Source of the DNA: Bugula neritina
Lineage: Eukaryota > Animalia > Bryozoa
DNA length: 64,000 nucleotides
NCBI GenBank assembly: GCA_964035545.1
Contig: OZ037772.1
Span: forward strand, 9,851,150-9,915,149
Direction: 5' to 3'
Within the stretch, counting starts at the first letter, position 1; the number at the start of each line of letters is the position of its first letter. Position numbers and translations under genes: made by a program. The notes under the pieces were generated by a model. That model was not told where the DNA came from. It saw only the letters and a list, made by a program, of their open reading frames with translations, and searched no databases. Of the stretch, positions 20,836 to 63,995 are shown in pieces.

Positions 20836-23800
20836 ATGGATAATACTGGAGTCAATTGTGAGAGAGCGTGCAGAATATGCTCTACTCAAATAATAGCTGC
20901 CTTTGTACAGGAATGGTTTGTAAAATAATTTATTTACTATAATATTGTAACCCAAATTAATTCAATTAAAATGTTGATGTCTGGAAATTCCAGAACTTAA
21001 TAATTTTTCTACAAGTAGTTTTACTCGTTGAAACGAATTTTTTTTATATGATTTGAATCAACTGAAGTACTTACAACAGGCAATGTAACAACAATATATT
21101 ATAATATAATATAATATAATATAATATAATATAATATAATATAATATAATATTATATAATATAATATAACATAATAGAATATAATATAATATAAAATAAT
21201 ATAATAAATTATAATATAATATAATATAATATAATATAGTATAATATAATATAATATAATATAATATAATGTATTATAATATGATAACGCAAAATATAAT
21301 GCATTACCTATACCTATAGAAAGAATCTTAGTTATAAACAACGTAGGCCTATATATTATAATAACTATAATATATATGCATGATATCGTCTAAAATGATA
21401 TATGATGTAACATAAAATAAAGTAATATATTAAATGTAATTATATTACAGTATGTAGTAACTTCATATAAACAGCAAATTTATAATGTGCTGCTTAAAAA
21501 ATGTACATGTGCAACTTTAATTTATTGGGTTTCATTTAATGGGATTTTTTATCCTGTTTAGGCAACAAGAGAAATTTTTTTTAAAGTTTAGTCAAAAATG
21601 AATGAAGGAAGAATCCAGGAGAAAATTGTAGATATCATGCTCTAAAATTCTCTCTAGTTAAAACACCATAATAAAATAATAAACTTGCAATTAACGTATT
21701 GGCAAATAATCTATTAGTTTACAGTTACTGGACGCATATATGTCTCTATTGTAGCCTCAGTATATCGCAAGGAGAGTATGTCCAGATTGAGGGAGTAGAA
21801 ATTGATCAAAATGTTTCTAGCCTTCAGTTAATCAAATATATGAGAAATGCTAGTAAGTAAATATTCAATAAGCAAATTATTTTACAAACTATTAAAAGTT
21901 ACTATAAAAAAGATACACAATTACCAGATCTGTTTTTAATAATTAATAATTAATAATTATTTGATAAGTTCATATATGAACTTTGATGCAAAAGCATGAA
22001 CAAGCTTTAAAAAACATGCATCGATCATAATATTATGATACTTAAATTGCAAATGAAAATATCATTCAACTGAATTTTGAATTGAATTCCAGCATCAATT
22101 ATTTTTTAATTTTAATATTAAGCAAAACTAAAATTAAAGTGCTTATTAGTTTATACTATTTTTCCGGTCAACAATATTACGATTTTGTCAACTTTGCATC
22201 TTCCTTCTAGGGTTCAAACTTCTTCTGGATTACCACAACCACATGTTGGTAGAAAAAGTGCGAGAGAACACGTCTTGCTATGAACCAACCAGCGACAACC
22301 TTGTGAGGGCCTATTGGAAGCTGCTTTATGACAACCTGCTTCAAGATAGCGTTATCACTTGGACAAAAATTATGATGGTAAGGAGAAAAAAATTGTAATA
22401 GCCTACTTATTATAAGGTTCTTTTTTAACTATAATTTCAAATAGAGTTGAAATTGAAATGTTTTTTGCGGTAATATTATAGTAAGTAACCAATGCAAGTT
22501 AGAACCCTGCATTATCCTAATAGCCACTTTATGTTCTGGATCTTTGTGGCAACGCCATTTTATTTTATAGATCAAAAGTTGTGTTATCAAGCATATATCT
22601 GCCAAACAAATATTGCACTTTGCTTTTGAAACTTTTGAGGTTTTCAAACTAAAATTTCCTCTGCATAAACTTCCAATCAAAATTATTATTAGAATTTAGA
22701 CTTTTTGCATTAAGCTGTTAAATGAGGCTTGCGCACATGCTTATAGCCATCAGAGTGTTTGTCAATTGTCTATAGATTTGTTGTACACTTTTTCATTTTT
22801 ATCTCTTCTTGTTTCTGTCCTACTTCATTGCACTAGCTTTTTATATCTGCATATCTTTAAATTGTTTTTGGGTAAACATTTATGTCTTGCTAATATATTT
22901 CCAATGGCTACAAGCCAAGTTTTCTAGCAGCCGATTTAAAACAACTAAATATATTTAGGCTATATATATATGTATTTAAAGCATTAATTGAGCTTTAACT
23001 CTCAAATATATTCCTGCAATCAATGCAAAGTCTTAACTACATAATATATACACTTTCTTAGTTCAATGCCATGGCTTAAAAATGTATCTATTATTTACTT
23101 TGAAAGATTCTAGCCATAGCCTGTGGTCTTGCTGAAACAGCCTCATGTGCCAGACGTAACAAACGAGTGGCGGAAGTTATAAACTGGACAGCTGAGTCTT
23201 TCAAACTTATGAATATCGACAAATGGATTGAGTCTATGGGTGGTTGGGTAAGCTTCTGATAATTTATTGTTTACTAACTTGTAGTGTATTTGGTGTTTAT
23301 ACGTTGATGTATGAGTAGACTATATATACAATCGAGTTTTGCAAATAAAGTTGTTAGTTTTGTAGTTGGTTAGCATGGAAGAAGTCGCCGTCAATGCTTG
23401 ATTGCAGCAAAAATTGCTGATTGATTGATATAACAGCTTGAATAACATAGTAATGTGCTCAATTGCCTAAAAAGTTTGTCATAGCGTTCACCAAAAATGA
23501 AGAAAAAACAGATAAATGAATATTTATGCTCGAAGCTGTTTTATAGCATTAAGCTTTGCATAATAAAATATATTGATTGCGAAGTATTGCCAATGTACAT
23601 ACTTTGACTTGAACAACTAAAATTGCTCAAAAAAAACTGGAACCGTACAGTGGAATGATTCTAACTAGAGCTTTTTAGCAATCAAATTATTGCTTGTTCA
23701 AATTTTAGCTATATGAGAAACTCTTATTGAAAGAAGCAGTAGATAAGATATTTGTTGACTATAAATGGTTTATTATTATAATAAAAATATTATTAATTAT

Positions 23801-24243
23801 TTTCAATAAATAATTTTATTATATATATACAAGTTTTGTTTTATTATTTGTTACAGATGGAACTCCCCAATCAAATAGAACAATTTCCTCTACCTACACC
23901 TTTCCCAATACACCGGAGAAAAGCATTAATTAGTGAAACATCAAATGGCTGCACAGGAAGTTCTGTTGCAGAAAAAACAAAAGTCTGTGGAGATTCTGGC
24001 ATAAACCAACAACCACCACCATATTCTAGACAGCTACAGCAGGAACCTTCCACGGCAATACATGGTAGATGTGTGGCAAACAATCGAGATTTGAGAGCTG
24101 ACAAGAAACAGACAAATAACTTGGAAAACTCAAATTGTTATGGAGGATGGTTAGATGGAGGAGATTCCTTTGGCAGAAAGTTAATGGATGCTTCAGTCAC
24201 TGATTGGGAAAAAGAATATTTCGATTTAGTTCGAATAGAATAA
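20836..24243 (+). CDS. Divergent Bcl-2-family protein 1 (~290 aa; 128-aa hydrophilic tail, no TM)
   Basis: Exons 20836-20915, 21755-21852, 22211-22377, 23107-23247, 23857-24243 (phases 2,1,0,0). BH4-like STQIIAAFVQE, BH1-like LLQDSVITWTKIMM, BH2 DKWIESMGGW followed by an intron. Exon 1 is the least certain. Confidence 0.8.
21096..21272. repeat. (ATATA)n pentanucleotide microsatellite
   Basis: Visible tandem ATAAT units. Confidence 0.9.
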
Positions 24244-63700: not shown

Positions 63701-63995
63701 TCCTAAAGCTGAATGCATCCAGGGCCCAAGCCTAAATCAATTGCAGGGCCCTTTGTTCTACGCCGCAATGGCCGGAGGTCTGGCAATCGGTGCAGCTGTG
63801 GCTAATTTGTATAATGTGGCTGAAAGACTCAACTCGAAACACACAGGAGAATCCAAATTAAACATAGATGCAGTCGGTATGTATATTTCACAAGTGTTTG
63901 ATTTCAAACGATTATTTGTTTAGCTTTACCAAATAGATGTTGATATGCTTATAGCTGTTATATTTTAATGTGTTTAATAAATTTTTTTAGGATGA
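60755..63995 (+). CDS. Divergent Bcl-2-family protein 9 (~220 aa) retaining a TM-like C-terminal segment
   Basis: Exons 60755-60807, 61245-61357, 62098-62258, 62628-62768, 63687-63876, 63991-63995 (G-stop; the unspliced alternative stops at 63923). BH4-like STRVVLQRFMLDRLEAEG, BH3-like LLHDAREQAFE, BH1 KLFKKGKCSWRRICL, BH2 KFLEKKGGW|, TM-like PLFYAAMAGGLAIGAAVANLY. Confidence 0.85.
60911..61120 (+). mobile_element. tRNA-derived SINE family A, full-length copy with TSD
   Basis: Family consensus; flanked by TATCACACATGTATGT (60895-60910) / TATCACATATGTATGT (61136-61151). Confidence 0.85.
61410..61490 (+). mobile_element. tRNA-like fragment, probable second SINE family or tRNA pseudogene
   Basis: B-box GGTTCGAGTCCC and tRNA-sized spacing; weakly similar minus-strand pieces near 46775-46980 and 52250-52450; a full cloverleaf is not convincing. 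Confidence 0.4.

Follow-up and report, generated by a model that had tools for sequence, protein, structure and literature searches.

A tandem array of nine units

In a 64,000-nucleotide (nt) stretch of bryozoan DNA (contig OZ037772.1, positions 9,851,150 to 9,915,149; hereafter the window), positions 20836-64000 carry nine units on the + strand (U1 to U9; Table 1) that form a tandem array of divergent Bcl-2-related genes. Reading the sequence and splicing it by script gave all nine the same exon plan, and in the eight intact units every intron is bounded by GT-AG, with phases 2,1,0,0. These eight (U1-U6, U8 and U9) have a stop-free spliced frame, incomplete in U9 at the window edge, while U7 is a pseudogene. 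Exon 4 measures 141 nt in seven units and 129 nt in U2 and U3, and in nine of nine it ends in xGW followed at once by the donor GT. Over the whole window, the combination of AG, an open frame of 40-50 codons and GGN-TGG followed by GT occurs nine times on the + strand and never on the - strand, against a mean of 0.01 per window in 100 composition-matched random windows. This confirms the layout that an earlier sequence-only reading had described, namely nine same-strand units with these phases and these two exon-4 lengths.

The first donor of U1 (GTTTGT) is weak and makes the least secure junction of the array; just 5' of the U1 start, a short stretch flanked by AG and GT (20795-20813) could be an untranslated micro-exon. 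In U9, a phase-1 donor at 63876 leads to a sixth exon, so that the gene runs beyond the window. We found no RNA run containing the stretch that could support splicing; the single run that did contain it looked like heterozygous DNA and had no splice joints. Because the BH (Bcl-2 homology) domains of the paralogues are only 13-32% identical, self-BLAST at the DNA level reveals the U6-U8 duplication alone. The nearest paralogue of U2 is U3 (32-35%), and U9 is the most divergent member in the tree.

Table 1. Annotated features of the window (aa, amino acids)
Feature	Position	Strand	Description
U1	20836-24243	+	290 aa; exons 20836-20915, 21755-21852, 22211-22377, 23107-23247, 23857-24243; 128-aa polar tail, no anchor
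U2	24746-28221	+	318 aa; exons 24746-24867, 25268-25368, 26404-26570, 27200-27328, 27784-28221
U3	29337-33526	+	844 aa; exons 29337-29617, 29980-30080, 30506-30672, 30942-31070, 31670-33526
U4	35135-38358	+	341 aa; exons 35135-35181, 35526-35632, 36209-36366, 37167-37307, 37786-38358
U5	39536-43586	+	517 aa; exons 39536-39606, 40276-40382, 41013-41170, 41822-41962, 42510-43586
U6	44424-49226	+	594 aa; exons 44424-44521, 45109-45221, 45621-45781, 47040-47180, 47955-49226
U7	49905-54517	+	chimeric pseudogene; exons 49905-49960, 50604-about 50707, 51347-51504, 52513-52653, 53468-54517
U8	56045-59014	+	208 aa; exons 56045-56097, 56729-56841, 57379-57542, 58156-58296, 58859-59014
U9	60755-64000	+	at least 219 aa; exons 60755-60807, 61245-61357, 62098-62258, 62628-62768, 63687-63876, next from ~63991
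Tandem duplication	45340-56832	.	copies ~45340-50707 and ~51171-56832, 80-88% identical
DOK/FRS2-like adaptor gene	1-6800	-	multi-exon; IRS-type PTB domain (Pfam)
Carboxylesterase-family gene	9100-16640	+	multi-exon; signal peptide; Pfam COesterase
Small cysteine-rich secreted gene	17800-18970	-	between esterase and array; weak Ly6/uPAR match

The count of eight genes and one pseudogene, also proposed before, is borne out, with the refinement that U7 is chimeric, its exons 1-2 being of U8 type and its exons 3-5 of U6 type. It carries a stop in exon 1, has lost the exon-2 donor and has a frameshift in exon 3; exons 4 and 5 (the latter of 349 codons) are open. The duplication created U7, and its junction lies in CA/AG microsatellites of intron 2, as unequal crossover would produce. 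The duplication is also present in Bugula neritina, where U7 has the same exon-1 stop and additionally lacks exon 4; since the stop is common to both, duplication and inactivation predate the species split. The last exon of U7 is open in both Bugula genomes compared (53468-54517; L001:15097-16458), with a ratio of nonsynonymous to synonymous change (dN/dS) of 0.4-0.7, despite upstream exons that were broken before the split. In a neutral simulation, the chance of its staying open was at most 0.06 at 0.08 changes per site and below 0.01 at 0.16, and the introns of U7 diverge from those of U6 by 0.15. This exon could serve as an alternative last exon of U6, or it could reflect gene conversion.

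Homology to the Bcl-2 family

Positions 56-100 of the Pfam Bcl-2 domain (PF00452) are matched by the exon-4 peptides of six of the nine units, with E-values of 2e-4 in U1, 1.3e-5 in U3 and 4.6e-5 in U5. Both exon 3 and exon 4 of U4 match, either one with E near 0.01, and exon 3 of U9 matches at E 0.08; the exon-3 matches, two in all, are weak and fall at positions 25-53. Single exons of U2 gave no Pfam match. When a family profile was compared with the PDB, the best natural match was Bax (E 1.5e-7), followed by Bak, Bok and Bcl-2; two designed helical repeats ranked higher and were rejected, their scores being sums of weak stretches. Among 1.84 billion representative proteins, a profile search found mainly Bcl-2-like sequences, along with two repeat proteins, and profile-profile comparison (hhalign) with fetched Bax-like proteins gave a probability of 99.3% and an E-value of 1.6e-20 over 143 columns.

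A homologue from another bryozoan, Watersipora subatra XP_067942729.1, gave a structural model of eight helices (predicted local distance difference test, pLDDT, 83.7). Its top structural matches are all Bcl-2 folds, well clear of unrelated rows: Bcl-xL at Z 14.3, BFK at Z 8.2 and poxviral Bcl-2 folds at Z 7-9. A Bcl-2 fold for this protein is also indicated by an ESM feature search, for which the sequence is the sole input. The best Atlas match to the model by shape was a 480-aa chordate cluster, partly with PF15661 (CF222), at a template modelling (TM) score of 0.59, which we take to be C6orf222/BNIP5, another atypical Bcl-2-related protein.

Gene structure points the same way. A phase-0 intron directly after the GGW of BH2 occurs in nine of nine units, and likewise in catfish Bax and brittle-star Bok; the sequence-only reading had invoked this intron as a feature of the family, as indeed it is known to be (PMC8998228). 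The homology of the array genes to Bcl-2 is well supported by the Pfam matches of single exons, the profile match to Bax and the Watersipora model, which bear out the identity proposed earlier, and the eight-helix fold would carry over to the window's own proteins through their homology with the Watersipora protein.

Orthologues, selection and family spread

Searching with the U6 tail yielded a hypothetical protein of B. neritina as well as JGI contigs that cover this locus. These contigs align to the window at about 75-85%, introns included, with U4, U5, U6 and U7 in the same order; the orthologues of U3 and U8 were found on other contigs from that JGI sample. The window would therefore come from a close Bugula relative. 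For U1, U2 and U9 we found no orthologue for checking, and metagenome scans for U9 and U1 gave no match. In all orthologues checked, exons 1-4 keep their lengths and splice sites, and the BH exons are 83-97% identical between the window and B. neritina. The dN/dS of these exons is 0.125 in U3 (exons 3-4), 0.039 in U4, 0.07 in U5, 0.25 in U6 and 0.076 in U8, and that of the tails is 0.29-0.36 (0.35 for U3). In U8, 150 of 157 residues are identical to a B. neritina-like orthologue, while in a second haplotype the listed differences in the U4 BH domain comprise six synonymous changes and one replacement. U3-U6 and U8 are under purifying selection. Because the BH exons are this similar, with dN/dS of 0.04-0.25 across the Bugula comparison, the divergence between paralogues is old and the genes are now constrained; the description of the cluster as rapidly diverging did not hold up.

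It could be argued that these are duplicates in decay, or exon-like matches that arose by chance, and that they have no function. One unit is indeed a pseudogene, splicing has no RNA support, and U2 and U9 have little or no Pfam signal. Against this stand the excess of exon-4 signatures over chance and, in U3-U6 and U8, exon lengths and splice sites that are kept in B. neritina together with dN/dS far below 1. This explanation is largely refuted for these five units, and for the array as a whole we regard it as extremely improbable.

Annotation has missed these genes, as the sequence-only reading had foreseen. Among the B. neritina GenBank models, which are called hypothetical, one begins at exon 4, another starts within exon 3 and has an incorrect splice after exon 4, and a third falls 47 aa short, as would be expected if exon 4 were skipped; EB796_023536 is a partial annotation of the U6 orthologue. 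In the GenBank assembly a frameshift in the last exon of U6, probably an assembly error, splits the gene model, and the JGI contig lacks it (L001:11129-12511 versus L002:9857-11240). The Watersipora gene, annotated as 'uncharacterized', has the same five exons and intron phases; its exon 4 measures 141 nt, and its tail is anchor-less. It has no neighbour copy within 10 kb, and a word-based search with its domain returned only itself.

By exon plan, the Watersipora protein and B. neritina EB796_023536 and its neighbours (B. neritina has orthologues of U3-U8) belong to the same subfamily, which spans at least two cheilostome genera. The proposed lineage specificity of the cluster therefore stands at a deeper level and fails at a narrow one, the five-exon plan being present in Watersipora too. 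On a marine metagenome contig, the boundaries of exons 3 and 4 agree with this plan; the contig also has a last exon of low complexity and perhaps a further copy after it. Eleven exon-4-like fragments (P0010, P0012, P0016, P0019, P0023, P0026, P0031, P0046, P0049, P0057 and P0060), mostly on short ENA, JGI and Logan contigs, apparently start at the same splice position, and they suggest that the subfamily is widespread in further animals.

In a tree with canonical Bcl-2 proteins, the nine bryozoan sequences fall on one side of a branch with support 92/52 and long branches, and they are not placed with Bax or Bok. The tree is compatible with the single bryozoan expansion proposed earlier, while monophyly is not established by it. 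The three further introns that the window units share with Watersipora are an independent argument for one bryozoan subfamily.

Degenerate motifs and long polar tails

The BH1 segments of the eight units read TWTK, NWEI, EWSS, TWNR, SWTR, TWTK, KWTY and SWRR. The Trp is invariant and is followed by Arg or Lys in six of eight, and the glycine of the canonical NWGR occurs in none, a loss that is considered to make a groove for BH3 improbable (PMC8998228). On a BH3 matrix, helix 2 scores at most 10, compared with 20-34 in canonical proteins, and the Gly-Asp pair of BH3 is absent from helix 2 in all units. The best scores (9-10) belong to U5 and U6, where the Gly is replaced by Glu, in a codon that is interrupted by intron 2.

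The tails of U1-U6 comprise 128-618 aa and are polar, without any hydrophobic segment (hydropathy at most 0.68, versus 1.8-2.2 in anchored controls). U8 has a short tail that ends in a moderately hydrophobic helix (hydropathy 1.71), and U9 has a stretch of moderate hydrophobicity in exon 5. In canonical proteins, the C-terminal anchor directs the protein to mitochondria and has been described as crucial for canonical function (PMC8998228). The 618-aa tail of U3 is rich in Ser, Pro and Thr, with 60 S/T-P sites against 28 expected; S/T-P sites also occur in other tails, and U2, U4, U5 and U6 have basic clusters. A 40-aa motif appears twice in the U3 tail (32425-32572 and 32719-32866), with very little change from one copy to the other or from one species to the other. 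Both copies start with Phe-Asp plus a small residue, resembling a caspase site. The U6 tail has a charged helical stretch and 7-aa repeats, and the tails of U3, U5 and U6 matched no Pfam family. Acidic cores resembling the LC3-interacting region (LIR) occur in four of ten tails, compared with about 1.4 expected for a pattern that was chosen post hoc. In the U4 tail, residues 193-220 (37909-37992) form an island of 28 residues identical in B. neritina (p 0.03) that includes a BH3-like helix without the key Asp. BH3 motifs in the tails of U2 and U4 were considered and rejected as not significant on the BH3 matrix.

These features bear on whether the proteins are apoptosis regulators still, that is, cytosolic inhibitors or sensitisers whose grooves co-evolved with equally divergent bryozoan BH3 ligands (in the array, in the tails or in canonical Bax/Bak) and which tune forms of programmed degeneration, among them polypide recycling and metamorphosis. 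All of their closest relatives are such regulators, the BH1 Trp is kept, with a basic neighbour in six of eight units, the BH3-like helix of U4 sits within the invariant island, and stable purifying selection fits a developmental role. However, that helix lacks the Asp and is not significant on the BH3 matrix (p 0.31), the glycines for close helix packing are replaced by bulky residues, and there is no anchor for reaching mitochondria. We consider this possibility somewhat unlikely.

Alternatively, the units could encode latent membrane permeabilisers of the Bax/Bok kind, inhibited by their tails and freed by proteolysis or phosphorylation like BID or BFK. The best scores come from Bax-like proteins, the multi-exon plan is closer to effectors than to the two-exon pro-survival genes, helix 5 is hydrophobic, and intron 2 falls within the BH3 region, an arrangement also described for mammalian Bok (PMC8998228). 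However, oligomerisation needs an intact BH3-in-groove contact, which is absent here; the tree does not group the array with Bax or Bok; and the GGW intron alone is common to the array and the two genes compared, catfish Bax and brittle-star Bok. To us, such latent killers seem distinctly improbable.

A putative bank of soluble adaptors

We favour, with as much belief as doubt, the reading that this is an old tandem array of functional genes, representing a bryozoan (at least cheilostome) subfamily of non-canonical Bcl-2-fold soluble adaptors with non-BH3 partners. Each protein would be a soluble adaptor in two parts. The helical bundle would keep a groove, remodelled and different between paralogues, which would be unsuited to the standard BH3 contact and could bind paralogue-specific partners. 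The long disordered tail, in place of the anchor exon after the BH2 intron, would set location and phosphorylation control. The array might then provide a set of signalling adaptors or decoys for innate immunity and the control of cell death, in a mode similar to that of BCL-G/BFK or poxviral A46/A52 and unlike that of Bcl-xL or Bax. By analogy with those proteins, a role in immunity or cell-death control is probable.

Several points weigh against this interpretation. The single-exon Pfam scores fall under the whole-domain cut-off. The confident model concerns the Watersipora homologue and was obtained from an alignment that included canonical Bcl-2 proteins, which limits its independence; an unbiased model of a 91-aa partial U6 orthologue gave Foldseek E-values above 0.4, with Bcl-2 rows at TM 0.5-0.6 among other helical bundles. 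Hydrophobic tail segments are kept in U8 and U9, and Bok-like proteins kill cells although the BH1 glycine is often missing from them. The immune role is proposed by analogy, and strong purifying selection is unlike the signature of an ongoing arms race.

The array can be compared with several known systems. With the multi-motif proteins (PF00452; Bax, Bak, Bok, Bcl-xL) it shares the BH1 Trp, the xGW of BH2, the phase-0 intron and, by homology, the eight-helix fold, and it differs from them in lacking the NWGR glycine of BH1, the BH3 Gly-Asp pair and, in U1-U6, the anchor. The effectors Bax, Bak and Bok have a small residue and Asp in the BH3 of helix 2 that the array does not have, and three further introns of the array are not in common with the Bax and Bok genes checked. 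The pro-survival genes for Bcl-2, Bcl-xL and Mcl-1 have two coding exons and a C-terminal anchor, whereas the array has five coding exons and no hydrophobic segment in U1-U6, U8 and U9 being ambiguous in this respect.

Parallels are also found among atypical members. BCL-G (BCL2L14) and BFK (BCL2L15) are anchor-less. They are atypical Bcl-2-fold proteins whose full-length forms bind no other Bcl-2 protein, BCL-G binding TRAPP instead; however, they are single genes that keep BH3 and BH2 and lack BH1, whereas the array keeps a BH1-like segment and has a degenerate BH3 (PMC10244440). The tails of the array genes, for their part, differ from BCL2L13/Bcl-rambo, which ends in a membrane anchor and has a proven LIR motif, in that U1-U6 have no anchor and only weak LIR-like matches. 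BCL2L13 nonetheless resembles them in its long low-complexity region after BH2. The poxviral proteins A46, A52, N1 and B14 have Bcl-2 folds that have expanded and diverged strongly, and they act independently of BH3 binding; being viral, intron-less and tail-less, they would offer a functional analogy alone, and cellular Bcl-2 proteins match better. The bivalve IAP (inhibitor of apoptosis) expansions are likewise large expansions of apoptosis regulators in sessile marine lophotrochozoans, of a different family (PMC7831173, PMC8917759).

Published invertebrate genomes have about 1-11 Bcl-2 genes in all, with motifs described as stable across animals and bryozoans not covered (PMC8998228), versus at least eight here in one array. 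Our literature search, made largely without subscription journals, turned up no paper on Bcl-2 genes of bryozoans. The presence of eight constrained paralogues without the motifs within 43 kb implies that published counts can overlook an entire subfamily, since single exons score under domain cut-offs and gene models are broken. The array would be a natural panel for studying the functions of a Bcl-2 fold that has neither BH3 binding nor a membrane anchor, and its genes are candidates for a part in the immunity of colonial bryozoans and in their repeated tissue degeneration. It is tempting to speculate, although we think it rather doubtful, that bryozoans hold by far the largest Bcl-2-fold repertoire of any animal, with dozens of anchor-less paralogues in several arrays. 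These would form a BH3-independent system of immune signalling or decoys, comparable, on the cellular side, to the A46/A52 radiation of poxviruses. Maverick/Polinton elements of this genome that carry Bcl-2 might be partners in an exchange with this system, or be in conflict with it.

Neighbouring features

The array is preceded in the window by three genes of other families (Table 1). A dispersed repeat of about 200 nt, resembling a short interspersed nuclear element, occurs in both orientations with 70-85% identity (3149-3361, 11468-11638, 31444-31605, 45838-46345, 51576-51789 and 60915-61127). Two copies form an inverted pair in intron 3 of U6, and the repeat is also present in B. neritina.

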